Source of the DNA: Macrostomum lignano
Lineage: Eukaryota
Direction: 5' to 3'
Assembly (NCBI GenBank): GCA_002269645.1
Contig: NIVC01001502.1
Coordinates: 131,827-195,826 of the forward strand
Length of the DNA: 64,000 nt
Shown: one piece after another, positions 29,743 to 45,716 of the stretch
How the letters are laid out: each line of letters begins with the position of its first letter
Numbering within the stretch: position 1 is the first letter of the stretch
Translations under genes and position numbers: made by a program
The notes under the pieces: model-generated
Seen by the model: only the letters and a program-made list of their open reading frames with translations
The model's database searches: none
What the model was told of the DNA's origin: nothing

Positions 29743-30594
29743 GATGTCAATAAATTGCTGATTTCACAATTGCTAATAACTGACTCCCGAAAGATCGACG
29801 CGCGCACCTTCTGGCATAAAGCGTTTGAAAATTAGTTGAATCATCATCATAATTCTTGATAAAATATGCAATATTCTTATAAGCTACTTATCAAATAGAA
29901 ATATAGGCTAAATATAATTTAAAAAATAAATAACGAACAAAATTTATTTTCAAAATTAAGAAATGCCGTCCAGGAAAAGAGATGTTATTATTGCTGATCA
30001 AAGTCAAACAGTGTGTGTGTTTTAGCTGCGCCACGACAAATTTGGCAGACGATTGAGCGCATAATAATAATGATAATAATAATAGTAATAATATAAAAAT
30101 TGCTTTTACAATCAGAGCGTGGGGGCTGAGCGCACAGACAAAAATGACTGAGAGAAAAAAATCGAAAAAAAATAACAAAGAACAGTTGGGACTTCCGGGA
30201 GGGGGAGGAGGATTTGGCGAACTCGAACTAATTCGACACAAAAACCTTATAAAAGCGCAAAGACTCGAGAGAATAAATGTGACTGAAAAGTGTTTGCAAG
30301 CCAGAAAAGTACATTCATAAAACATAAAGCATAGGCAGTTCCGGTCAGATGTTTTCGAATGTTAATCGGGTACTTAAAAAAAACTTTTTTATTTCTGTGT
30401 CAATTTTGTCAAGAGCAGAACTTTCAAATAGATGGAAAACGCACGGGGTAGAGCAGAGTATTAAAGATAGCTGGATAACAAAATAAACGCAAATGCGCGA
30501 AAAACTGCATCTAAAAGCATCGTAGACTGGATTTGAGCACGGAGTATTGATTTTTTCTTATCGGAGCATTTTTAGAAAAACTTGTGCATTTTTT

Positions 30595-31350
30595 ATGGAG
30601 ACTTGATCGGCTCATTGGGGAGACTTGATCAGCTCATTGGGGAGACTTGATCAGCTCATTAGGGAGACTTGATCAGCTCATTGGGGAGACTTGATCAGCT
30701 CATTAGGGAGACTTGATCAGCTCATTAGGGAGACTTGATCAGCTCATTAGGGAGACTTGATCGGCTCATTTGGGAGACTGAAAAATTAGTCAATTAGTGA
30801 CACTTGGACTATTTTATTAAAGGGAGTAAGAACAGTCTATTAGGGAGACTAAAACCAGTCCATTAGGGAAACTCAGACCCGTCAATTAGGGAGACTAAGA
30901 CCAGTCAATTAGGGAGACTAAGACCAATTCATTAGGGAGACTAAGACCAGTCGATTAGGGAGACTAAGACCAGTTCATTAGGGAGACTAAGACCAGTACA
31001 TTAGGGAGACTAAGAGCAGTCCATTAGGGAGACTAAGACCAGTTCATTAGGGAGACTAAGACCAGTCCATTAGGGAGACTAAGAGCAGTCCATTAGGGAG
31101 ACTAAGAGCAGTCCATTAGGGAGACTAAGAGCAGTCCATTAGGGAGACTAAGACCAGTCCATTAGGGAGACTAAGAGCAGTTCATTAGGGAGACTAAGAC
31201 CAGTCCATTCGGAGACTAAGACCAGTCCATTCGGAGACTAAGACCAGTCCATTCGGAGACTAAGACCAGTCCATTCGGAGACTAAGACCAGTCCATTCGG
31301 AGACTAAGACCAGTCCATTAGGAGACTAAGAGCAGTCCATTAGGGAGATC
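30595..31350. repeat. Two related arrays: 22 bp ttagggagacttgatcagctca (30595-30780) and 23 bp ttagggagactaagaccagtcca (30838-31350)
   Basis: Both share the cattagggagact core. Confidence 0.92.
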
Positions 31351-31456
31351 AACCTATTAGAGATAATTAGAGTAGTCAATGATTAGACAAAATTTCAGCC
31401 TTAAAAGTCAGTCGAAGTGAGTGAACACGATCATAAAAGGTATTCATGTTTGCTTT

Positions 31457-34400
31457 TCACCGCCTTCGGCGCGGTTTAATCGGCGCCCGTCGAGTCGCTT
31501 CGCCAGCGCCGCCACCAGCCGCAGAGAAGTTGAAATTTGGCGCCGGCGCTTGCGGCGCAGCTCCAGCGACGGCCGCGCCAAGAGAGAAATTGAAGCTGGA
31601 ACCACTGGATGACTGCTGCTGCTGATTCTGCTGTTGTTGCGGCGGCTGCTGTCCGAAGCTGAACAAAGAGCCGCCAGTTGAAGAAGTCGATCCAGCGGTA
31701 GCTGCCGACTGGCCAAACGTAAAGCCGGTGCCGGCGCTGGTTGAAGATGGTGGCGCATTTGGCGCGGCATTTGCAGCGCCGGAATTATTAGCGCCAAAAC
31801 TAAAGCTGGGATTTGAGGCTGATTTGCCGAAACTGAACGGATTGGGAGAAGCGGCGGCAGCCGGTTTTGCCACGGTGGACTGGTTGCTGCTCGCTGATTG
31901 GCCGAATAGGGTACCGGCTGATGACGTGTTCGAAACTGATTGGCCGAAAAGTAGACCAGTGGATGAGTTGCTCGAAGCTGATTGGCCGAAGACTGGAGCA
32001 GCGGATGACGTGTTCGAAGCTAATTGGCCGAAGACTGGAGCAGCGGATGACGTGTTCGAAGCTGATTGGCCGAAGACTGGAGCAGCGGATGACGTGTTCG
32101 AAGCTGATTGGCCAAAGACTGGAGCAGCGGATGACGTGTTCGAAGCTGATTGGCCAAAGACTGGAGCAGCGGATGACGCGTTAGAAGCTGATTGACCAAA
32201 AAGCGACGTTCCTGAAGACTTACTGACAGTGGAGGCAGCATGACCAAACAAATTATTGGCAGATGCGGTAGTGGCAACGGTCTGTCCGAAAACGGAGGAG
32301 CTCGATGATGCAACCGAAGATGCTTTACCAAAGGTGAATGCACCGGATGTTGAAGATTTAGAAGCAGAGTAACCAAATGCGGAAGCCGTGGAAGCTGTAG
32401 TGGCAGCAGGTTGGCCAAATACGGAACTTGTGGAAGAAGCACTTTTACTAAATACGAATCCTGAACTAGCAGATGACACATTTGAACCCGACTGGCCGAA
32501 AATTGGTGCGGCAGATGACGCATTTGAAGCTGATTGGCCAAACACCGGACCAGCTGATGACGTGTTGGAAGCCGATTGGCCAAAGATTGGACCATTTGAT
32601 GACGTGTTAGCAGCTGATTGGCCAAAGATCGGAGTGGCAGATGACGCATTTGAAGCTGATTGCCCAAACACTAGACCAGCTGATGACGCATTGGAAGCTG
32701 ATTGGCCAAAGATTGGACCAGCCGTTGGCTTACTAGAAGCTGATTGGCCAAAGATTGGACCAGCTGATGACGTGTTGGAAGCTGATTGGCCAAAGATTGG
32801 ACCAGCCGTTGGCTTACTAGAAGCTGATTGGCTAAAGACGGGACCAGCTGATGACGTATTAGAATTTGATTGGCCGAAGACTGGAGCAGCAGATGACCTA
32901 TTAGAAGCTGATTCGCCGAAGACTGGAGCAACAGATGACGTGTAAGAAGCTGATTGGCCAAAAACTGGAGCAGCAGATGACGTATTAGAAGCTGATTGGC
33001 CAAAAACAGGAGCAGCAGATGACGTATTAGAAGCTGATTGGCCAAAAACAGGAGCAGCAGATGACGTATTAGAAGCTGATTGGCCGAATGCTGGAGCAGC
33101 AGATGACGTATTAGAAGCTGATTGGCCGAAAGCTGGAGCAGCAGATGACGTGCTCAAAGCTGATTGGCTGAACACAGGAGCAGTAGTAGAAGTTTGACCA
33201 AAGCCTGTAGCTGTAAAACTTGCAGAAGCATTATTATTAAAAGAAGAGTTTGAAGCAGCCAGGTTTAAACCTGATGCAGTAGTTGAGCCTAAAGCTGGTT
33301 GACTAATCACTGGAGCTACAGATGCAGCAGTAGACGCAGTGTTGGAAGCTGCCTGACCAAATGTTACAGCGGCAGACGGAGTGTTGGAAGCTGCCTGACC
33401 AAATGTTACAGCGGCAGACGGAGTGTTGGAAGCTGCCTGACCAAATGTTACAGCGGCAGACGGAGTGTTGGAAGCTGCCTGACCAAATGTTACAGCGGCA
33501 GACGGAGTGTTGGAAGCTGCCTGACCAAATGTTACAGCGGCAGACGGAGTGTTGGAAGCTGCCTGACCAAATGTTACAGCGGCAGACGGAGTGTTAAAAG
33601 CCGTTACAGTTGTCACAGGAGCTGACGTGTTCGAGGCTGCTGTAACTGACACGGAGTCTGCAGACGGGGTCTTGGAAACTGTTTGGCCAAAGCTCACTGC
33701 TGCGGATGAAGTGTTGGTAGCTGTTATATTACTAGCAGTAGTTGGAGTTTCAGAAAAAGCGGTCCCCAGCACGGGAGCGTTGAGAGACGAAGTGTTAGAA
33801 TCCGGCTTACGAAATTCTGCCAAAGGCGTTGCCGAAGCGGCAAGGTTCAGCACAGGTGCAGCGGCGGCAGCGGGCGTGCTAGGACTGCTATTCAACGAAT
33901 TATTCGCCGCAGCTGCAGATTCTCCCGCAAGCAGGCGACGAATTCTTTCCCGACGACTGGCTCTGGCCTGACGGTCGCGTTCGCGAGCTTGCCGAGCGGC
34001 GGCCAGTCGGTCTATCGGTGAGGCGCCGCTCGGCATCGTCGACGAAAATTCCTCGCCGACGGTATCGCTGGCCGATACGGCGGCATCATCCCGACGCCTG
34101 CCGGAGCGCTCCAGGTTGGCGACCAGAGCGGAGACGGTAGCCCGAGCTGACGACTGCTGCTGGTGGTGCCTGCGACGCGCCGATGCCGACAATATCGAAG
34201 TCGACGAAATCGACGGCGAAGGCGAAACCAAACCGACATTGGTCGCTTCATCGACGCCGACTGTCGCAGTTGGTTCGGTACTGGGCGTAACTGCCGCTAG
34301 TTGAAGCGGCGCGGCAGCAGGTCCGGAAGTATCTCGCTGCTCCGACGGCGCCGGCTCCGTCGCCGGAAGCGGCGGCGGCAAAATCCGCCTAGGCGCCACC

Positions 34401-35113
34401 GGAAGCCGAATTGGCCCGCCGCCGAGCACTTCGCGCAGCGACGTCGCTTTGAATTTGCCGCCGTCTAATCCGCCGCCAGATTCCGACGTTGGTCCGGCTG
34501 CCGCGGCGGCGCCGCCACTAGACGAATCACCTAGGATGTCGTCAAGAGCAGCGGCGGCTGCTGCGTCGGCAGCGGGTGTCGCAGCGGCGATGCTGACACG
34601 TCGTCGCTTTTTCTTTGTCGAAAAAGAAGTCGCCGACGCGTCTTCAAAGTCGGCCCTATTCTCCACGTCCGGATTGACGTCCTCAGCAATGTCGGCTGCT
34701 TCCCCGCCGCCTTCTGCATCGTCGTTGTTGATGCTGGGCGGCGCCAGGGAGCGCCGTTTCCTGGTCTCGATGATGCGCAGGGCGCGCAGCACGCTGGTCT
34801 GCTCGTCCTCGTCTCGAAGCACTGGCTGCTGCTGCTGCTGCTGCTGCTGATGCGGCCTCGGCGGCAGCGGCATGGTGCACCTACTGGGCGGTCCACGTTG
34901 AAACGGCGACTTCTTTGCCGACACTGATAGCTCTGTTGACGCCAACTGGCGGCTGGTGAGCACCGACGAAGTTGGCCGGCTGGCTGCAGTCGAAGAGGGC
35001 AGCAGGCCGACTGAGATGCTCGCCGGCGATTTGGTCGTCGCCGCGGCGGCGGCATCGGCAGCGGCGGCGGACCGCTTCGAGAAGCTGTAGTAGCCGGAGG
35101 CTCTCGGACGCAA
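31457..35113 (-). CDS. FG-repeat nucleoporin-like protein (Nup153/POM121-like C-terminal architecture); one 1218-codon exon without its own start exon
   Basis: Uninterrupted ORF starting at a phase-0 acceptor (tattccag|TTG CGT). More than 30 FGQ motifs in S/T/A-rich 14-aa repeats, basic NLS-like motifs (TRKRR, KKKRRR), and a basic C-terminal tail RRAPIKPRRRR resembling Nup153/Nup1 ends. No zinc fingers or TM segment visible. Confidence 0.8.
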   Translation of the reverse strand: MRPRASGYYSFSKRSAAAADAAAAATTKSPASISVGLLPSSTAASRPTSSVLTSRQLASTELSVSAKKSPFQRGPPSRCTMPLPPRPHQQQQQQQQPVLRDEDEQTSVLRALRIIETRKRRSLAPPSINNDDAEGGGEAADIAEDVNPDVENRADFEDASATSFSTKKKRRRVSIAAATPAADAAAAAALDDILGDSSSGGAAAAAGPTSESGGGLDGGKFKATSLREVLGGGPIRLPVAPRRILPPPLPATEPAPSEQRDTSGPAAAPLQLAAVTPSTEPTATVGVDEATNVGLVSPSPSISSTSILSASARRRHHQQQSSARATVSALVANLERSGRRRDDAAVSASDTVGEEFSSTMPSGASPIDRLAAARQARERDRQARASRRERIRRLLAGESAAAANNSLNSSPSTPAAAAAPVLNLAASATPLAEFRKPDSNTSSLNAPVLGTAFSETPTTASNITATNTSSAAVSFGQTVSKTPSADSVSVTAASNTSAPVTTVTAFNTPSAAVTFGQAASNTPSAAVTFGQAASNTPSAAVTFGQAASNTPSAAVTFGQAASNTPSAAVTFGQAASNTPSAAVTFGQAASNTASTAASVAPVISQPALGSTTASGLNLAASNSSFNNNASASFTATGFGQTSTTAPVFSQSALSTSSAAPAFGQSASNTSSAAPAFGQSASNTSSAAPVFGQSASNTSSAAPVFGQSASNTSSAAPVFGQSASYTSSVAPVFGESASNRSSAAPVFGQSNSNTSSAGPVFSQSASSKPTAGPIFGQSASNTSSAGPIFGQSASSKPTAGPIFGQSASNASSAGLVFGQSASNASSATPIFGQSAANTSSNGPIFGQSASNTSSAGPVFGQSASNASSAAPIFGQSGSNVSSASSGFVFSKSASSTSSVFGQPAATTASTASAFGYSASKSSTSGAFTFGKASSVASSSSSVFGQTVATTASANNLFGHAASTVSKSSGTSLFGQSASNASSAAPVFGQSASNTSSAAPVFGQSASNTSSAAPVFGQSASNTSSAAPVFGQLASNTSSAAPVFGQSASSNSSTGLLFGQSVSNTSSAGTLFGQSASSNQSTVAKPAAAASPNPFSFGKSASNPSFSFGANNSGAANAAPNAPPSSTSAGTGFTFGQSAATAGSTSSTGGSLFSFGQQPPQQQQNQQQQSSSGSSFNFSLGAAVAGAAPQAPAPNFNFSAAGGGAGEATRRAPIKPRRRR

Positions 35114-35151
35114 CTGGAATACGGAAATTTGCTTACGATTTATGATTGTGC

Positions 35152-35845
35152 TCAGCTAGGGATCAAAGAGACTCAATGGGAGTTACTCGGCTAGGGATCA
35201 AAGGGACTCAATGGGAGTTACTCAGCTAGGGATCAAAGGGACTCAATGGGATTTACTCAGCTAGGGATCAAAGGGACTCAATGGGAGTTACTCAGCTAGG
35301 GATCAAAGGGACTCAATGGGATTTACTCAGCTAGGGATCAAAGGGATTCAGTGAGATTTACTCAGCTAGGGATCAAGGGGATTCAATGGGATTTACTCAG
35401 CTAGGGATCAAAGGGACTCAATGGGATTTACTCAGCTAGGGATCAAGGGGATTCAATGGGATTTACTCAGCTAGGGATCAAAGGGACTCAATGGGATTTA
35501 CTCAGCTAGGGATCAAAGGGACTCAATGGGATTTACTCAACTAGGGATCAAAGGGACTCAAAGGGATTTACTCAGCTAGGGATCAAAGGGATTCAGTGGG
35601 ATTTACTCAGCTAGGAATCAAAGGGACTCAATGGGATTTACTCAGCTAGGGATCAAAGGGAATCAATGGGATTTACTCAGCTAGGGATCAAAAGGACTTA
35701 ATGGGATTTACTCAGCTAGGGATCAAAGGGACTCAAAGGGATTTACTCAGCTAGGGATCAAAGGGATTCAGTGGTATTTACTCAGCTAGGAATCAAAGGG
35801 ACTCAATGGGATTTACTCAGCTAGGGATCAAAGGGATTCAATGGG
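35152..35845. repeat. Minisatellite, 35 bp unit ctcagctagggatcaaagggactcaatgggattta
   Basis: About 20 tandem copies between RPS3 and the FG exon. Confidence 0.96.
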
Positions 35846-36039
35846 GTACTAAGCATAATAGGACACGCCTACTAGTCGATAGAATAACAAAGACAAACTA
35901 TTAAACAAAGATTCCAAGCCAACAAACTTCCAGTCGCCAACTGCAATCAGTCTCTTTGCTCACAGAGACAAGCAAATTTACTAATTTTAACCATAGTATT
36001 CATTGAAAGGTCCTCCAACGCAATCCTTCAACAGGCTGT

Positions 36040-39000
36040 TTAGGCCACGGCCATGACCTCAGCCTGAGGCTTCTGCTGCTTATTCTCCGAATAAGGCTCG
36101 GCCGGCACCGGCTGCTCTTTGGGATCGGCGATGGTCACGTGATCCGGCAGGGGCTTGCGGGGCGCGACGCCTCCAGCCGGGGCCTCCCAGTTCTGCATGA
36201 TCTTCACCTGAGAGGAATTGAGATTGGAGTTAGTGAGTCGTACAGCGGTTCATACAGTGAGTCATACAGGAGTCATACAGTGAGTCATACACGAGTCATA
36301 CAGTGAGTCATACACGAGTCATACACGAGTCATACACGAGTCATACAGTGAGTCATACAGTGAGTCATACAGTGAGTCATACAGTGAGTCATACACGAAT
36401 CATACAGGAGTCATACAGGAGTCATACAGTGAGTCATACACGAGTCATACAGAAGTCATAACTGATACAGTGAGTCAGATCAATAAGCCTCACCTGGATG
36501 CCCAGTACACCCTGCCGGAGCTGTACGTGCCGCACAGACCGGTCAATGAAGCGGACAGACGGCTCGCCGCTGTGGATCATGAAGCCTTCAGTGAATTTCA
36601 TCGATTTGGCGCGCTGACCGCGCAGCTTGCCGCTAACAATGACTTCGGCGCCTTTGGCGCCAGACTCCATAATGAAGCGCAGCACGCCGTAGCAGGCGCG
36701 ACGGACAGCCAGGCCACCGAGAAGCTTGTAGCGCAGGGACTCGGCCTGCATGGTTGGGTTGGCAGTTTGTTTTAGTAAAGAGGATTGGATTCTGCTAGTA
36801 GAGTGCAAGTTAGTTATGCCGTTTGGGGCAACATGACGGTAAATCGGTGACGCTGATTGATCTGGCGCCATCTGACGCTGATTGTTGATCTGGCGCCATC
36901 TAACACTGATTGATCTGGCGCCATCTGACACTGATTGATCTGGCGCCATCTGACGCTGATTGTTGATCTGGCGCCATCTAACACTGATTGATCTGGCGCC
37001 ATCTGACGCTGATTGTTGATCTGGCGCCATCTGACGCTGATTGTTGATCTGGCGCCATCTAACACTGATTGATCTGGCGCCATCTGACGCTGATTAATCT
37101 GGCGCCATCTGACACTGATTGATCTGGCGCCATCTGACGCTGATTGATCAGGCGCCATCTGACGCTGATATATCTGGCGCCATCTGACACTGATTGATCT
37201 GGCGCCATCTGACACTGATTGATCTGGCGCCATCTAACACTGATTGATCTAGCGCCATCTGACACTGATTGATCTGGCGCCATCTAACACTGATTGATCT
37301 AGCGCCATCTGACACTGATTGATCTGGCGCCATCTAACACTGATTGATCTAGCGCCATCTGACACTGATTGATCAGGCGCCATCTAGTACTTATGTTTGC
37401 TTTTAATTTAGTCTTGGCATCATACTTTTCTTAAATAGCTGTCGTCATAAGTTGGTACGAATGTGAACAGCAGATATAGATGTTAAAATCATTGCCATTA
37501 GTACTAAAACTTAAAATTATTGGCTTATGAATTTACGAGTACATGTATGTTTGTAGTCAAGGACTGAATGATGAGATTGGGATCGGGGGTGGGACTGAAC
37601 TGAAGATGGTATCAGATAAGAGACTTAAGATGTGCTCATACAAAGCATGTTGCTGTCGTCATAGCTCAAATCTTTAAGGCTAACGAATGTGAACAGCAGT
37701 AATGCAATTTAATCATAGCTGCTCATATAAAACAACAAAATCATATTTTATGAAATCAATTCCAGTTGGCATCATACTGAACAATATGTTGTCGGCATAA
37801 CTTGTACGAATGTGAACAGCAGAATGGTTATAATCACTGCCAACTTGGGAATTCACGGGAGATGGGACTCGGGATGGGTCTGAGGATGGGACTGAGGATG
37901 GGTCTGAGGATGGGTCTGTGGATGGGACTGAGGATGGGTCTGAGGATGGGTCTGAGGATGGAACTGAGGATGGGACTGTGGATGGGACTGAGGATGGGTC
38001 TGAGGATGGGACTGAGGATGGTCTGAGGATGGGTCTGAGGATGGGACTGAGGGTGGGTCTGAGGGTGGGACTGAGGATGGTCTGAGGATGGGTCTGAGGA
38101 TGGGACTGAGGGTGGGTCTGAGGGTGGGACTGAGGATGGGACAGAGGATGGGTCTGAGGATGGAACTGAGGATGGGTCTGAGGATGGGACGGAGGATGGG
38201 TCTGAGGATGGGACGGAGGATGGAACTGAGGATGGGTCTGAGGATGGGTCTGAGGATGGGTCTGAGGATGGGACGGAGGATGGGACGGAGGATGGAACTG
38301 AGGATGGGTCTGAGGATGGGTCTGAGGATGGGACTGAGGATGGGACTGAGGGTGGGACGGAGGATTGGTCTGAGGATGGGACTGAGGGTGGGTCTGAGGG
38401 TGGGACTGAGGATGGGACAGAGGATGGGTCTGAGGATGGAACTGAGGATGGGTCTGAGGGTGGGACTGAGCATGGAACTGAGGATGGGTCTGAGGATGGG
38501 ACGGAGGATGGGACGGAGGATGGGTCTGAGGATGGGACTGAGGATGGTCTGAGGATGGGTCTGAGGATGGGACTGAGGGTGGCTCTGAGGGTGGGACTGA
38601 GGATGGGACAGAGGATGGGTCTGAGGATGGAACTGAGGATGGGTCTGAGGATGGGACGGAGGATGGGTCTGAGGATGGGACGGAGGATGGGACGGAGGAT
38701 GGGTCTGAGGATGGGACTGAGGATGGTCTGAGGATGGGTCTGAGGATGGGACTGAGGGTGGCTCTGAGGGTGGGACTGAGGATGGGACAGAGGATGGGTC
38801 TGAGGTTGGAACTGAGGATGGGTCTGAGGATGGGACGGAGGATGGGTCTGAGGATGGGACGGAGGATGGGACGGAGGATGGGTCTGAGGATGGGACTGAG
38901 GGTGGGACGGAGGATGGGACTGAGGGTGGGTCAGAGGATGGAACTGAGGATGGGACAGAGTTACAAATGATAAAATCTGTCACCAAGGCAACGCTCAACC

Positions 39001-39318
39001 CACCTGTGCCACAGCGGACAGACCCCTGTTGGCCATCTTCTCCGCGTAGATTTCAATCTGGCCATCCTCGAAGCCGAATCGTTTCTGCAGCACGGCGGTG
39101 AGCTCGCGAACCTTGCGGCCCTTCTCGCCCAGCACGCTCTGGGTGCGGGTGGCCAGCACGATCACCTCGATCTTGGCCGGGGTCACGCGGAGCTCGATGC
39201 CCGAGTACCCGTCCTCGGCTAGTTCGCGCTTCAAGAATTCGTCCAGTTCGGCGCGGAACACGCCGTTGGCAACGAATGCCCGCTTCTTGCTCATCACAGC
39301 ATTCTTGCTGGCGGCCAT
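36040..39318 (-). CDS. RPS3: 40S ribosomal protein S3 (uS3), 244 aa
   Basis: Exons 39318-39004, 36745-36494, 36207-36040, phase 0. Motifs [65 protein letters not shown]. Confidence 0.98.
36232..36478. repeat. Minisatellite, 14 bp unit gagtcatacagt/cacg, RPS3 intron 2
   Basis: Tandem copies. Confidence 0.92.
36850..37386. repeat. Minisatellite, 23-26 bp unit ctgattgatctggcgccatctgaca, RPS3 intron 1
   Basis: Tandem copies. Confidence 0.94.
37415..37497 (-). ncRNA. Box C/D snoRNA, diverged paralog (type 3)
   Basis: TGGCA stem - C ATGATTT - guide CTGCTGTTCACATT - D' CGTA - C' ATGACGA - D ATGA - TGCCA stem; 83 nt, sense to RPS3. Confidence 0.72.
37632..37721 (-). ncRNA. Box C/D snoRNA, type 2, RPS3 intron 1
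   Basis: C ATGATTA (37716-37710), guide ACTGCTGTTCACATT, D' CGTT, C' ATGACGA, D ATGA (37639-37636); terminal stem weak. Confidence 0.62.
37764..37845 (-). ncRNA. Box C/D snoRNA, type 1, RPS3 intron 1
   Basis: 8-bp terminal stem AGTTGGCA/TGCCAACT directly flanking C GTGATTA and D ATGA; guide CTGCTGTTCACATT before D' CGTA; C' ATGCCGA; 82 nt. Confidence 0.78.
37855..38960. repeat. Minisatellite, 12 bp unit gaggatggg(t/a)ct
   Basis: Tandem copies with higher-order block duplications. Confidence 0.96.
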
Positions 39319-39349
39319 GCTTGCATGCGGACAGTGGATACTCTTATTT

Positions 39350-39955
39350 AACCTGACTCTTATCTCCCTACTGACTCTCCTTATTTCACTACAGACTGTT
39401 CTCATCTCTCCCCCTCCTGACTATCCCCCTACTGACTCTCCCCCTACTGACTCTCCCCTTACTGACTCTACCCCTACTGACTCTCCCCCTACTGACTCTC
39501 CCCCTACTGACTCTCAACTACTGATTTTGGTCTACTTACTCTCCTCATCTCCCTACTGACTCTCCTCATCTCCCTACTGACTCTCTCCCTACTGATTCTC
39601 CCCCTACTGACTATCCCCTACTGACTATCCCCTACTGACTCTCCCCCTACTGACTATCCCCTACTGACTCTCCCCCTACTGACTATCCCCTACTGACTCT
39701 CCCCCTACTGACTATCCCCTACTGACTCCCCCCCTACTGACTATCCCCTACTCACTCATCCCCTACTTACTCTCCCCCTACTGACACCCCCTACTGACTC
39801 TCCCCCTACTGACTCTCTTCCTACTGACTCTCCCCCTACTGACTATCCCCTACTGACTCTAACCCTACTGACTACCCCTACTGACTACCCCCTACTGACT
39901 CTCCCCCTACTGACTCTCCCCCTACTGACTCTCCCCAACCGACACTACCCCCTAC
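39350..39955. repeat. Minisatellite, 15-16 bp unit ctactgactctcccc, upstream of the RPS3 ATG
   Basis: Tandem copies. Confidence 0.94.
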
Positions 39956-41004
39956 AGCCTGACAAGTGGCAGTAAAGGAGCCAAGAACCAAGTGAAGTCG
40001 CATAATGCAGAGCTTATAAATCTGCACTAGTTACTAAAAACAATTGCAACTTAAAGATTTAGGCGACAGCTTAACTGAAGACGCGTCTCGTTTTATTAAA
40101 AAATATTTTTCATATTTCCACTTCATATATAAAAAGTAAAAGGAGGGTTGCGGCTGTCAGATGTCTTAAGTCAAACAAAATGATATTAAGGGTCAAATTT
40201 AGGGAGAAAATAAGACGGTGACAGCTTCAGACACTGAATTGATTTGCAGATAAGAGAGTTATTTAATAACAAAAAGGGCATTAACGATACAATGGGTTTG
40301 TACAACAGGATTAAAAGTAATAAACTACTGCCAGTAGCTGGGTTATAAGCTATATATATTGCTACAGCACAAAGCAAAGACGAGACCCAAAGAAAATGTG
40401 CGAGTTCTGCCGCCCCACCCACGGACCGAAGCACCTGCACTCGCGCTGCACACGCTCAATAGTGAATAATTAATAATCCGATTAATACATTTTTGCATAC
40501 ATTCTGTTCGAAAAACAACTTAATAAACACACGGCAGTGACACAAAACATGTGCGATAAACTATTATTGTACGCAGAAGCAAACTAAATTAATATAGAGA
40601 GTAAATTTATAAATAAACATACAATCAATCACAATTTCTGTTGACAAATAAAGATTCTTAGCGGGGTCGCTAACCAGCGTCTGCAATTTTCTAATAAAGT
40701 TGTCTAGCTAGAGAATGGACAGAGAAAAAAATTGACCTTGTTCGATGCACGTCTCAAGTTTTGTTCTCAATGGAAAAATTGTCTCATCACGCTACTATTG
40801 AAGGGCTTCTACACGGATAAGTAGTGAGTTTAGGTGATGAGCTGAATATTAATTCAATTTGTGTATTTTTACAATGCAAAGCAAGCAGTTCTCGAAATTG
40901 TACGATTTGGATGGCAGAGTGCGCGAGAAATATGCCGAAATAAAAGTACTCATTGGAGTACGCGCGAACTCTTCACTGTCACATTTACAAGCATTTTGAG
41001 GGCC

Positions 41005-41825
41005 ATGCTTATGGTGATTTGTGGGCGATTCTTATGGTGATTTGTGGGCGATTCTTATGGTGATTTGTAGGCGATTCTCATGGTGGTTTGTGGGCGATTC
41101 TTATGGTGGTTTGTGAGCGATTCTTATGGTGATTTGTGGGCGATTCTTATGGTGATTTGTAGGCGATTCTCATGGTGGTTTGTGGGCGATTCTTATGGTG
41201 GTTTGTGGGCGATTCTTATGGTGATTTGTGGGCGATTCTTATGGTGATTTGTAGGCGATTCTCATGGTGGTTTGTGGGCGATTCTTATGGTGGTTTGTGG
41301 GCGATTCTTATGGTGGTTTGTGGGCGATTCTTATGGTGGTTTGTGAGCGATTCTTATGGTGGTTTGTAGGCGATTCTCATGGTGGTTTGTGGGCGATTCT
41401 TATGGTGATTTGTAGGCGATTCTCATGGTGGTTTGTGGGCGATTCTTATGGTGGTTTGTGGGCGATTCTTATGGTGGTTTGTGGGCGATTCTTATGGTGG
41501 TTTGTGAGCGATTCTTATGGTGGTTTGTAGGCGATTCTCATGGTGGTTTGTGGGCGATTCTTATGGTGATTTGTAGGCGATTCTCATGGTGGTTTGTGGG
41601 CGATTCTTATGGCGGTTTGTGGGCGATTCTCATGGTGGTTTGTGGGCGAGTCTCATGGTGGTTTGTGGACGATTCTTATGGTGGTTTGTGAGCGATTCTT
41701 ATGGTGATTTGTAGGCGATTCTCATGGTGGTTTGTGGGCGATTCTTATGGTGGTTTGTGGGCGATTCTCATGTTGGTTTTTTGGCGAGTCTCATGGTGAT
41801 TTTTTGGCGAGTCTCATGGTTTGTT
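41005..41825. repeat. Minisatellite, 23 bp unit ttatggtggtttgtgggcgattc
   Basis: Tandem copies. Confidence 0.96.
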
Positions 41826-42017
41826 TTTTCAGGCTTGGAAGAAAGGTGATACAGTTCGGTTTTAGGGAGGAGATTCTTACGAGTTTTTTCACACAGTTTC
41901 AAAGCAATCAATCAGTTTTGGTAAAAAAAAGCAATTTTAAGTGAAATCAGTGACTTCTTACAAAGCAATAGATGTATGCATATATTGTCATTAACTTATC
42001 AACGGTCGCTAATTGCA

Positions 42018-45000
42018 TCAGCCAATCTGCATGCCCTGACCGCAGATGGACGAACTCTGCTGCTGCTGCTGAGGCAAATCAGACGAGGAGTTCAATGATC
42101 CCGTAGCAACAGCGGCGCCTGCTGCCATGCTGATAGTCACGCTAATGCCCAGGTTGCCAGTCTCAGCGAACAGGGAGGCAATATTTGAATCGAATACCAG
42201 GCAGTCCGAGTTCGCAATGGCGGCGTGCACGCCGTCGTGTATTGACCGCGGCGTCGCTTCCCAGGTGAGTCGGCGGCGCTGGCCATTGAGCTCGAGTCTG
42301 TAGGCGAACTGCTCCGCTTGCTTGCGGGTGCCAATGAGCTGCACGATGGCGTAGAACATCACCTGCAGTATAGGCGGGGTGGAGATGCTATTTGAGAAGA
42401 TGAGAAGTTGGGCAGTGGTGGTTAAGCTAGCTAACATCATGCTGTTGTGTAAATGAAGAAGACACATAATATAATGAGATGGGACTGGAGATGGGATCGG
42501 GTATGGGTTTGGAAATGGGATTCGGTGTGGGACTGAAGATACGCTTGGGTATGGGAATGGAGATGGGATCGAGTATCGGACTGAAGATGGGATCGGGTAT
42601 GGGACTAGAGATGGGATCGGGTATGGGACTAGAGATGGGATCGGGTATGGGACTGGAGATAGGATCGGGTATGGGAATGGAGATGGGATTGAGTATGGGA
42701 CTGAAGATGGGATCGGGTATGGGACTGGGAGATGGGATCGGGTATGGGACTGGGAAATGGGATCTAGGATCGGGTAAGGGACTGAAGATGGGATCGGGTA
42801 TGAGACTGGAGATGGGATCGGGTATGGAACTGAGATGGGATCGGGTATGGGACTGGAGATGGGATCGGGTATGGAACTGAAGATGGGATCGGGTATGGGA
42901 CTGAAGATGGGATCGGGTATGGGACTGGAGATAGGATCTGGTATAGTATGGGAATGGAGAAAGGATCTGCAATGGGATCAGGTATGGGACTGAATAACCT
43001 ATTATTTGCTCATACAAAGCATGTTGCTGTCGTCATAGCTCAAATCTTTAAGGCTAACGAATGTGAACAGCAGTAATGCAATTTAATCATAGCTGCTCAT
43101 ATAAAACAACAAAATCATATTTTATGAAATCAATTCCAGTTGGCATCATACTGAACAATATGCTGTCGGCATAACTTGTACGAATGTGAACAGCAGAATG
43201 GTTTTAATCATTGCCAACTTGGGAATTGACGGGAGATGGGACTCGGGATGGGTCTGAGGATAGGTCTGAGGATGGGACTGAGGATGGGACTGAGGAAGGG
43301 TCTGAGGATGGGTCTGAAGATGGAACTGAGGAAGAGTATGAGTTAGGGTCTGAGGATGGGTCTGAGGAAGGGTCTGAGGATGGGTCTGAGGATGGGTCTG
43401 ATGATGGGTCTGAGGATGGGTCTGAGGATGGGTCTGAGGATGGAACTGAGGATGGAACTGAGGACGGGACTGTAGAAGGGTCTGAGGATGGGTCTGAGGA
43501 TGGGACTGAGGATGGGTCTGAGGATGGGTCTGAGGATGGGTCTGAGGATGGGTCTGAGGATGGAACTGAGGACGGGACTGTGGAAGGGTCTGAGGATGGG
43601 TCTGAGGATGGAACTGAGGACGGGACTGTGGAAGGGTCTGAGGATGGGACTGAGGATGGGACTCAGGATGGGACTGAGGGTGGGACTGGGTATGGCACTG
43701 GAGATGGGATCGGGTATGGGACTGAAGATGGGATCGAGTATGGGACTGAAGATGGGATCGGGTATGAGACTGGAGATGGGATCGGGTATGGGACTGGAGA
43801 TGGGATCGGGTATGGGACTAGAGATGGGATCGGGTATGGGACTGGAGATGGGATCGGGTATGGGACTGAAGATGGGATCGGGTATGGGACTGGAGATAGG
43901 ATCTGGTATAGTATGGGAAGGGAGAAAGGATCTGCAATGGGATCAGGTATGGGACTGAATAACCTATTATTTGCTCATACAAAGCATGTTGCTGTCGTCA
44001 TAGCTCAAATCTTTAAGGCTAACGAATGTGAACAGCAGTAATGCAATTTAATCATAGCTGCTCATATAAAACAACAAAATCATATTTTATGAAATCAATT
44101 CCAGTTGGCATCATACTGAACAATATGCTGTCGGCATAACTTGTACGAATGTGAACAGCAGAATGGTTTTAATCATTGCCAACTTGGGAATTGACGGGAG
44201 ATGGGACTCGGGATTGGTCTGAAGATGGGACTAAGGATGGGTCTGACGATGGGTCTGAGGATGGAACTGAGGATAGGACTGAGGATGGACTGAGGATGGG
44301 ACTGACGATGGGACTGACGATGGGTCAGAGGATAGGTCTGAGGATGGGTCTGAGGACGGGTCTGAGGATAGGTCTGAGGACGGGTCTGAGGACGGGTCTG
44401 AGGATGGGACTGAGGACGGGTCTGAGGATGGGTCTGAGGATGGGACTGAGGGTGGGACTCAGGATGGGACTGAGGGTGGGACTGGGTATGGGACTGGAGA
44501 TGGGATCGGGTATGGGACTAAAGATGGGATCGGGTATGGCACTGGAGATGGGATCGGTTATGGGACCGAAGATGGGATCGGCCGATCGGGTATGGGACTA
44601 AAGATGGGATTGGGTATGGGACTCAAGATGGGATCGGGTATGGGACTGGAGATGCGACTGGGTATGATACTAAAGATGGGATCGGGTATGGCACTGGAGA
44701 TGGGATCGGGTATGGGACTGAAGATGGGATCGGGTATGGGACTAAATATGGGACTGAAGATAGGATCGAGTATGGGACTGCAGATTGGGTCGGGTATGCG
44801 ACTAAATGCATGACCAATTATCTGCTTATACAAGGCATGTCACTGCTATCACGGTTAAAATATTTTGAAAAGGAACACACAGGATTGCGAGAGAGAAGAA
44901 TGGCCCACTCACCTGACTATCCATTCGCTCCTGTTTCTCCAGTACAAGCATGAAATGATAGCCGAAGCAATTCTGCATCATGACCCAATCCACCGCGCCG

Positions 45001-45716
45001 GGCAAATTAATATCAGTAGCCAAAAAGATGATATCTTCTCCCTGCAAAGTGGTGATGCTCTTGTGCTGCTGCGTGAGGTGCTGCATGACATTCTCAAGTG
45101 AGCCCTGCCATTTGCAGCTGGCGCCAGGACAGGGACAAACGTACGGCCGGAATTCGCAGATCTCCTCGTGCTCAGCCTTAGCCGTGTGGTGAAACGCTGC
45201 CAGACAACCATTGCTGGCGTATTTGCACGGGAACTGTACCTGGGCGGCTAGGCGCTCCATAGCCAAGTTGCGAATATTGGCCAGAGGCCCGCGACAGCTC
45301 GGACAGCTGGTGAGTTTAGCCCGGCAGTTTGAGCACACAATGTGACCAGCCTGGCACTGGATTACAGGGGGCAGGGCGTAGTCAAAGCACACCGGGCACT
45401 CGAATAGCGAGGCCAGTTCCATATTGTGCGCGGCCGAGTCTGCGGCGCTAGCGCCGGCGCCAACTAAAGACGCGGCGCCGGGCGTTAAGCCGGACGAAGA
45501 AGGCGAGGCGGCGAGGGCGGCGGCGGCAGCTGCGGCGGCGCCAATCATCTGCGGCAGCACTGGCACGGATTTGGCGCCGGCGCATCCAGCGGCGCTATCA
45601 GACTGTAATGGCGCCGGCCGACCAATTGGGGCGCCGGTGGTAGCGGCGGCGCTGCTGTTGCTATTCCTATAGTGAGCCGAGGCCTTTGACGAAGGGTGAA
45701 CTTTGTTGCCATTCAT
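42018..45716 (-). CDS. SIAH: E3 ubiquitin ligase SIAH/seven in absentia, about 382 aa
   Basis: Exons 45716-44913 and 42362-42018, phase 0. [36 protein letters not shown], zinc fingers [25 protein letters not shown], and [37 protein letters not shown]. Confidence 0.97.
43006..43095 (-). ncRNA. Box C/D snoRNA, type 2, SIAH intron copy 1
   Basis: Same sequence as 37632-37721 through all boxes and the guide. Confidence 0.58.
43138..43219 (-). ncRNA. Box C/D snoRNA, type 1, SIAH intron copy 1
   Basis: AGTTGGCA-ATGATTA...CTGCTGTTCACATT-CGTA...ATGA-TGCCAACT. Confidence 0.72.
43971..44060 (-). ncRNA. Box C/D snoRNA, type 2, SIAH intron copy 2
   Basis: Duplicate of 43006-43095. Confidence 0.58.
44103..44184 (-). 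ncRNA. Box C/D snoRNA, type 1, SIAH intron copy 2
   Basis: Duplicate of 43138-43219. Confidence 0.72.

Follow-up and report, generated by a model that had tools for sequence, protein, structure and literature searches.

How one and the same pair of putative small nucleolar RNAs (snoRNAs) came to reside in introns of two neighbouring genes, RpS3 and SIAH, is the question raised by the stretch of 64,000 nucleotides analysed here (‘the window’), which is from contig NIVC01001502.1 of Macrostomum lignano (assembly GCA_002269645.1; our locus L002 matches the window 100% over 23,276 bp). We suggest, with a probability of roughly 0.6, that the shared sequence represents a pair of box C/D snoRNA genes with a history in three steps, that is, an old local duplication, a much later equalization of a short tract between the two introns, and a recent unequal crossing-over within one of them, whereby both the order and the mechanism of these steps are inferred from sequence comparison.

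Core copies and their host introns

A core of 242 bp is found once in RpS3 intron 1 (37634–37875) and twice in the SIAH intron (43008–43250 and 43973–44214). The repeat search likewise yields three copies of a ~300-nt unit, starting at positions 37623, 42997 and 43962 and thus spaced by 5374 and 965 bp, and a MAFFT alignment shows the RpS3 core to differ from the SIAH cores by exactly four substitutions, with the latter two being identical to each other. Every copy is located inside one of two host introns:

36746..39003, minus strand: RpS3 intron 1 (host), flanked by exons 1 and 2; splice sites CAG/GTGGGT and TGCAG/GCC read in the sequence
42363..44912, minus strand: SIAH intron (host), the single intron of the gene, between exons A and B; splice sites CAG/GTGAGT and CTGCAG/GTG

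RpS3 and SIAH are neighbours on the same strand. The RpS3 exons (39319–39004, 36745–36494 and 36207–36040 on the minus strand; tblastn agrees) encode a protein that, when spliced, is 100% identical to Macrostomum lignano BOX15_Mlig008787g3, while the gene called SIAH, with exon A at 45716–44913 and exon B at 42362–42018 of the same strand, exhibits the Pfam domains Sina_RING, Sina_ZnF and Sina_TRAF.

The window contains seven occurrences of the 16-mer CGAATGTGAACAGCAG (CUGCUGUUCACAUUCG in the minus-strand, or gene, orientation) compared with 0.03 expected, in all cases on the plus strand and within one or other of the two introns. These seven occurrences imply that the RpS3 intron harbours three units rather than two. 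All seven units, like the partial copy B', are on the minus strand and therefore sense to their hosts, both of which are minus-strand genes:

37764..37845, minus strand: unit A, RpS3 copy, box C/D-like, 82 nt; 8-bp terminal stem, C box GUGAUUA, guide CUGCUGUUCACAU, C' box UGCCGA, D box AUGA (descriptor scan, fold, alignment)
37634..37719, minus strand: unit B, RpS3 copy, box C/D-like; C box AUGAUUA, guide ACUGCUGUUCACAU (14 nt), C' box UGACGA, D box AUGA, 2-bp stem
37415..37497, minus strand: unit C, a third and older paralog, 77% identical to unit A; 5-bp stem, C box AUGAUUU, same guide, C' box UGACGA, D box AUGA
44103..44184, minus strand: unit A, SIAH copy a (descriptor scan, alignment)
43973..44058, minus strand: unit B, SIAH copy a (alignment)
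43138..43219, minus strand: unit A, SIAH copy b (descriptor scan, alignment)
43008..43093, minus strand: unit B, SIAH copy b (alignment)
44822..44866, minus strand: B', a decayed 3' half of unit B, 74% identical and devoid of C box and guide, 47 nt into the SIAH intron by its 5' splice site

The original prediction had proposed a two-snoRNA core shared by introns of the neighbours RPS3 and SIAH, present once in the former and twice, with a period of 965 bp, in the latter, with all copies in the same orientation and with four substitutions between hosts. The counts, period, orientation and substitutions are borne out by the repeat search, the strands of the units and the alignment, and the sharing between neighbours is confirmed by a second contig, NIVC01000834.1 (L001). 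The description of the core as a two-snoRNA element is right for units A and B; it had overlooked unit C, which lies outside the core in RpS3 intron 1, and the partial copy B'. We have very little doubt that the core copies are real.

Contig L001 contains the same block of SIAH, RpS3, FG-repeat protein and proteasome genes. It exhibits the same three units in the RpS3 intron and the SIAH cassette once, compared with twice in the window. Two of the four differences between RpS3 and SIAH cores are host-specific in both contigs (G/C in the leader; GACAAC versus GACAGC in unit A). The remaining two occur solely in the SIAH copies of the window (the C-box purine; UAUAACC versus UAAAACC) and are common to both tandem copies. 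The SIAH cassette, being present in both contigs with differences of its own, must hence be older than the split of the contigs, and the tandem duplication must be later than the two private changes which its products share.

In both introns the last snoRNA unit is located ~650–670 nt upstream of the 3' splice site (36746–37415 and 42363–43008). In vertebrates, the optimum distance for splicing-coupled assembly of C/D small nucleolar ribonucleoproteins (snoRNPs) is ~70–80 nt, so that processing of the present units may not depend on this distance rule.

Anatomy, guide and candidate target of the units

Read along the minus strand, the units share a common order of elements, namely one arm of a terminal stem, the motif RUGAUU(A/U) immediately following this 5' arm, the guide, the motif UAUG(A/C)CGACA, and GUAUGA immediately preceding the 3' arm. 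The terminal stem comprises 8 bp in unit A and 5 bp in unit C. Boxes and guide are invariant in the alignment of units A, B and C. A descriptor combining RUGAUUW...AUGA with a stem of at least 5 bp matches only these units in the entire 64 kb, always on the minus strand, compared with 0.5 matches in shuffled sequence. Every unit has U instead of G at the sixth C-box position, and AUGA instead of CUGA as its D box. In the kink-turn (k-turn) of box C/D RNAs, the sixth nucleotide of box C and the first of box D form a pair, and by this geometry the combination of a UGAUUA C box with an AUGA D box would replace the usual G-C pair of the k-turn by U-A, that is, constitute a compensated variant.

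A lax Rfam scan of 461 nt returned five matches on the minus strand, all of them to CD-box families, with the best scoring 15–16 bits compared with gathering scores of 45–50. In these sub-threshold matches SNORD11B, snoU36a and yeast snR41 align end to end with the units, the former two with unit A and snR41 with unit B. The matches lend indirect support to the compensated box pair, as resemblance in architecture and not as family membership. A plus-strand match to RAGATH-7 in the same scan was dismissed as a chance match.

Metagenome contigs were scanned for ATGTGAACAGCAGTTGRACATGGGTYAG, which identified at least 120 eukaryotic ribosomal DNA (rDNA) loci; the match lies within full-length eukaryotic large-subunit ribosomal RNA (LSU rRNA) in the two loci tested against Rfam. 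Among the matches listed, the 13-mer AUGUGAACAGCAG is present in 120 of 120 loci, and for unit B the complementarity extends to 14 nt. Every unit thus contains a perfect antisense match of 13–14 nt to a universally conserved LSU rRNA segment, for which we estimate a chance probability of ~3e-4. Apart from this match, the units contain nothing of 10 nt or more that is antisense to conserved rRNA, and the opposite strand yields only scattered, low-count matches. The bases preceding the 13-mer in the listed rRNAs are mostly UCC, not CGA, and hence the last three bases of the conserved 16-mer are probably unpaired; they may belong to a degenerate D' element (UCGUA or UCGUU).

Terminal stems, variant but compensating C and D boxes, and a 13–14-nt antisense match to LSU rRNA that is kept in three diverged paralogs lead us to consider it highly probable, as far as sequence can tell, that the units are box C/D snoRNAs. 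Several observations weigh against this assignment. The terminal stem of unit B comprises just 2 bp; the canonical descriptor, RUGAUGA...CUGA plus stem, has no match anywhere in the 64-kb window; and no Rfam family was detected at gathering score in the window, nor at E ≤ 1 in a 7.7-kb portion. The second antisense element of each unit lacks a match of at least 10 nt to conserved rRNA in the rDNA loci scanned. Moreover, the guide is followed by UCGUA or UCGUU and not by a convincing, CUGA-like D' box, which leaves the methylated nucleotide uncertain.

If D' were to start at CGU, the fifth-nucleotide rule would point to the second U of AUGUGAAC, which, by counting along the human sequence, we take to be U2402 of human 28S rRNA. 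The U equivalent to human 28S Um2402 is thus our best guess for the candidate target. Functionally, each unit would be processed from the host pre-mRNA, form a k-turn from its variant C box (RUGAUUA) and variant D box (AUGA), and assemble into a snoRNP; the guide (A)CUGCUGUUCACAU would then pair over 13–14 nt with the conserved 28S segment AUGUGAACAGCAG(U), and the likely function would be 2'-O-methylation near the 5' end of the guide/28S duplex.

The stretch following the C' box (CGACAGC) is also kept in all units. It mimics the rRNA target ACAGCAG and is thus able to base-pair, within the same unit, with the 5' portion of the guide; guide/CGACAGC pairings of this kind, which could represent an auto-inhibitory fold, a chaperoning fold or a coincidence, occur in the folds predicted for units B and C. 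A literature search for M. lignano snoRNAs turned up nothing relevant.

History of the shared tract

The cores are accompanied by two families of minisatellites, for which the following features were identified by Tandem Repeats Finder (TRF) or by comparison:

37861..38960, no strand: 92 copies of a 12-bp minisatellite (plus strand: GATGGGACTGAG), which in gene orientation lie upstream of unit A (TRF)
37560..37633, no strand: 24-bp relic of ~2–3 degenerate monomers, downstream of RpS3 unit B and ~73% identical to the matching SIAH flank
42479..42992, no strand: 24-bp minisatellite array, downstream of SIAH copy b (TRF)
~43690–43957 and ~44480–44810, no strand: further arrays of the same 24-mer in the SIAH intron
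43235..43690, no strand: 12-bp minisatellite, upstream of SIAH copy b (TRF)
~44200–44480, no strand: its 12-bp counterpart, upstream of SIAH copy a

The 24-mer is counted 39 times in the SIAH intron compared with once in the RpS3 intron (a 19-mer match with 2 mismatches at 37579–37597), and this single match identifies the 24-bp satellite on the RpS3 side as a relic and not an array. Of the tripartite cassette proposed originally, with a 24-bp satellite on one side of the core and a 12-bp satellite on the other, the 12-bp flank at RpS3 and both kinds of array at SIAH are therefore present, while at RpS3 the 24-bp component survives as a remnant only. The 12-bp arrays have three main monomers in common and private variants in each, the array at 37861–38960 included, and they differ both between the tandem repeats and between the contigs. 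Such variation implies fast turnover, and a border located within these arrays is not exactly placeable. Satellites as such are not specific to the cassette: ~40 distinct minisatellite arrays with periods of 4–59 bp and lengths of 0.2–1.3 kb occupy nearly every intron and spacer of the window (1–64000), which indicates a general habit of the genome as a whole. Monomers differ from array to array, with the exception of the 12-bp and 24-bp families, whose recurrence is confined to the sides of the snoRNA cores.

Alignment of the RpS3 and SIAH cassettes over 460 bp reveals 28–30 identical positions out of 30 all the way from the final 12-bp monomers to the end of unit B, with unit A and the 41-nt spacer included. 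Past unit B, towards the 24-bp array or its relic, the flanks are still homologous, and identity falls to 22 out of 30 (~73%) and lower. The tract of near-identity (98–100%) extends over ~270–300 bp, from ~37900 to 37634 on the RpS3 side, with its 5' border within the 12-bp satellite. Divergence thus amounts to 0.8–1.7% within the tract versus ~25% in flanks and relics, and a sharp border together with older, diverged homology outside the tract is the pattern expected of gene conversion. The partial copy B' provides further evidence for an older layer: its local alignment with unit B scores 30 compared with 8.5 ± 1.35 in shuffles (~16 standard deviations), it is present in both contigs, and it has its own transition into a 24-bp array. 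The sharp drop in identity past unit B and the old B' of the SIAH intron thus point to ectopic conversion, or re-copying, superimposed on an older duplication.

We propose that an old local duplication may have supplied each of the two neighbours with a related intronic cassette. At a much later time, non-allelic gene conversion or templated repair, operating in either direction, would have equalized ~300 bp between the two introns, which are located on the same strand at a distance of 5.4 kb. The equalized tract would extend from the junction with the 12-bp satellite through unit A, the spacer and unit B, and the event would predate the divergence between the two genome copies of the SIAH region. 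The last step, specific to the copy represented by the window, would have been the duplication of a 965-bp block consisting of 24-bp satellite, 12-bp satellite, unit A and unit B, through unequal crossing-over in which both 24-bp arrays of the SIAH intron took part. In gene orientation, the SIAH intron of L001 reads B' - 24-bp satellite - 12-bp satellite - A - B - 24-bp satellite, and that of the window reads B' - 24-bp satellite - 12-bp satellite - A - B - 24-bp satellite - 12-bp satellite - A - B - 24-bp satellite; the latter arrangement is what one would expect if the two 24-bp arrays of the one-copy form had undergone unequal exchange.

The proposal has to be weighed against simpler accounts. 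A single recent copying of a ~300-bp segment from one intron to the other, for instance through a switch of template at microhomologous satellite sequence, with neither earlier homology nor later homogenization, is a distinctly less probable account that nevertheless deserves consideration: divergence is indeed very low (2–4 differences per 242 bp), high identity extends into the 12-bp satellite on one side, and the two host-specific differences fixed in both contigs speak against complete homogenization since the contigs split. It leaves unexplained, however, that the flank past unit B is homologous and yet only ~73% identical, that RpS3 has kept a relic of the 24-bp monomer, and that the SIAH intron has long contained B' (74% identity), which is accompanied by a 24-bp array of its own; these features call for an older layer of homology. 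Invoking the opposite extreme, an old duplication whose likeness was maintained solely by purifying selection on two functional loci, with no conversion, would account for the evident constraint on boxes and guide. The 41-nt spacer is identical in all five core copies, however, and the ~30-nt leader is identical or nearly so, while units A and C, under the same kind of selection, are 77% identical with little kept beyond boxes, guide and stem, and the flanks have diverged by ~27%. Selection alone cannot explain an identical spacer when paralogs A and C have drifted this far apart; by our own calculation the chance of an unchanged spacer is ~0.73^41 = ~2.5e-6, and we regard this account as very improbable.

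Independent insertion of a mobile element into both introns, be it a snoRNA retroposon, a miniature inverted-repeat transposable element (MITE) or a Helitron-like carrier of tandem repeats, appears scarcely more plausible. snoRNA-derived retroposons are known (cited in PMC3412847), but the cores exhibit neither a poly(A) tail nor a target-site duplication nor a terminal inverted repeat, the repeat search returned 0 inverted repeats, and neither the A-tract nor the direct repeats of a snoRNA retroposon were found at the core boundaries. Two snoRNAs, their spacer and satellite flanks were moreover copied together, and all copies are confined to 7 kb in the same orientation; the remaining 57 kb of the window, as well as the 21-kb locus of an older RpS3 paralog (L003, below), contain none. 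Finally, a minisatellite-dense region with a copy number that differs between contigs (1 versus 2) naturally raises the suspicion that long reads were mis-joined or stuttered and thereby gave rise to the SIAH copies, or to the tandem pair. Such an artefact is also very doubtful, since the SIAH cassette is found in two separate contigs, each with its own substitutions and flanks. The two 965-bp repeats are 97–100% identical over the core and the proximal 24-bp array and 78–90% identical over the 12-bp arrays, where they differ in both array length and monomer variants, which argues against exact stutter by the assembler.

The three-step history proposed here is itself not free of difficulties. 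The fast turnover of the satellites could exaggerate the divergence of the flanks, and the two contigs are a mosaic, being ~99.9% identical from ~40300 down to 30100 and 1–6% different on the SIAH side, so that the identical RpS3 cores of L001 and L002 are not independent witnesses and count as one only. With respect to the view put forward originally, that unequal recombination or ectopic conversion is moving and homogenizing snoRNA genes between hosts, the mechanisms fit the drop in identity, B' and the structure of the 965-bp repeats. Continuing homogenization is a conjecture, and two host-specific differences are fixed in both genome copies. The more general notion that intronic minisatellite arrays serve as recombination substrates which repeatedly exchange and amplify snoRNA genes between hosts, that the intronic snoRNAs of this genome evolve in concert from host to host, and that this lineage uses the compensated, non-canonical C UGAUUA/D AUGA signature for at least one snoRNA family, is one that we can entertain only tentatively and consider rather unlikely.

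Surroundings and comparison with known systems

The tract of ~99.9% identity between the contigs extends over some 10 kb (~30100–40300 in the window; ~9000–19300 in L001) and comprises RpS3, the 1.1-kb satellite and the FG-repeat gene, with 1–7% divergence on both sides. Its appearance suggests that homeologs or haplotypes have recently undergone conversion or recombination here, or else that the two contigs have in common a segment identical by descent. Upstream of ~47500 (window numbering) the two contigs cease to align, and L001 contains, at 1279–1470 and ~3 kb upstream of SIAH, an additional fragment similar to exon B of SIAH (74% amino-acid identity with residues 268–333) that has no counterpart in the window. 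The FG-repeat gene of the window is a long open reading frame on the minus strand (31457–35113) for a Ser/Ala/Thr-rich, FG-nucleoporin-like protein with dozens of xFGQ repeats; it consists in part of coding tandem repeats of 42 and 126 bp, and the called gene has no Pfam match. The older RpS3 paralog L003 (contig NIVC01001130.1, 10001–11354), with ~95% protein identity, has lost intron 2 and has an intron 1 of 610 bp. Neither the guide (allowing up to 3 mismatches) nor the 12-bp or 24-bp satellites were found at this locus, its intron 1 exhibits no snoRNA-like unit, and no SIAH gene is located within 10 kb; L003 is therefore uninformative on the ancestral state.

With these units, a model organism for regeneration, in which few non-coding RNAs have been described so far, gains a probable box C/D snoRNA family that had not been annotated. 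Current knowledge of snoRNA mobility remains unchanged, and the main use of the finding is in annotation. What makes the locus instructive is that several layers are legible at one place, that is, an old duplication, a recent conversion between two hosts, and a very recent tandem amplification which differs between genome copies. The locus may, in addition, serve as a marker for the recombination rate of minisatellite-rich introns in a duplicated genome.

Set beside known systems, the locus is an ordinary, if clear, case of snoRNA gene duplication, for which gene conversion at a local scale together with unequal crossing-over is the most likely cause. New snoRNA paralogs originate either as tandem duplicates inside one host gene or as copies in another, with ribosomal-protein genes being the usual hosts (PMC2653536; PMC3412847), and snoRNA-derived retroposons of mammals and platypus are cited in the latter source. 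Like the cis- and trans-duplicated intronic snoRNAs of nematodes, platypus, chicken and sponges, the M. lignano paralogs occur both within and between hosts. In contrast to those, the second host is immediately adjacent, the copy was made at the level of DNA along with satellite flanks, and the identity profile points to a subsequent conversion of ~300 bp and not to a single duplication.

Intronic snoRNA clusters are also familiar from flies and plants. Tandem arrays of C/D snoRNAs are represented by SNORD115/116 and the 14q32 locus (cited in PMC2653536). As in these arrays, snoRNA-bearing repeats of M. lignano would have been amplified by unequal exchange and several snoRNAs would share one precursor; unlike SNORD115/116, there are just 1–2 repeats in one intron of a protein-coding gene, separated by minisatellites and not by exons. 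With regard to the boxes, the Rfam consensus sequences of yeast snR41 (RF01218) and of snoU36a (RF01302) carry the same UGAUUA C box as the M. lignano units, and that of snR41, AUGAUUA...UGUAUGAGcc, combines it with AUGA to give the same pair of boxes. Guides and targets differ, however, and the likeness is one of architecture only.

A possible functional parallel is provided by human SNORD143 and SNORD144, a paralogous box C/D pair in intron 3 of SEC31A which guides 2'-O-methylation of 28S Um2402 (PMC11773364; PMC5027482). In M. lignano, a paralogous pair likewise resides in one intron of a non-ribosomal host, SIAH, and its guide covers AUGUGAACAGCAG, in the same neighbourhood of 28S. Counted along the human sequence, this segment presumably contains U2402. 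The M. lignano units differ from SNORD143/SNORD144 in having no detectable sequence relation to them and no Rfam match, and with the D' box being unclear, the identity of the target is a guess. What is specific to the case of M. lignano, when compared with all of these systems, is the combination of an adjacent second host, a DNA-level copy with satellite flanks, a signature of conversion, and a compensated variant of the boxes.

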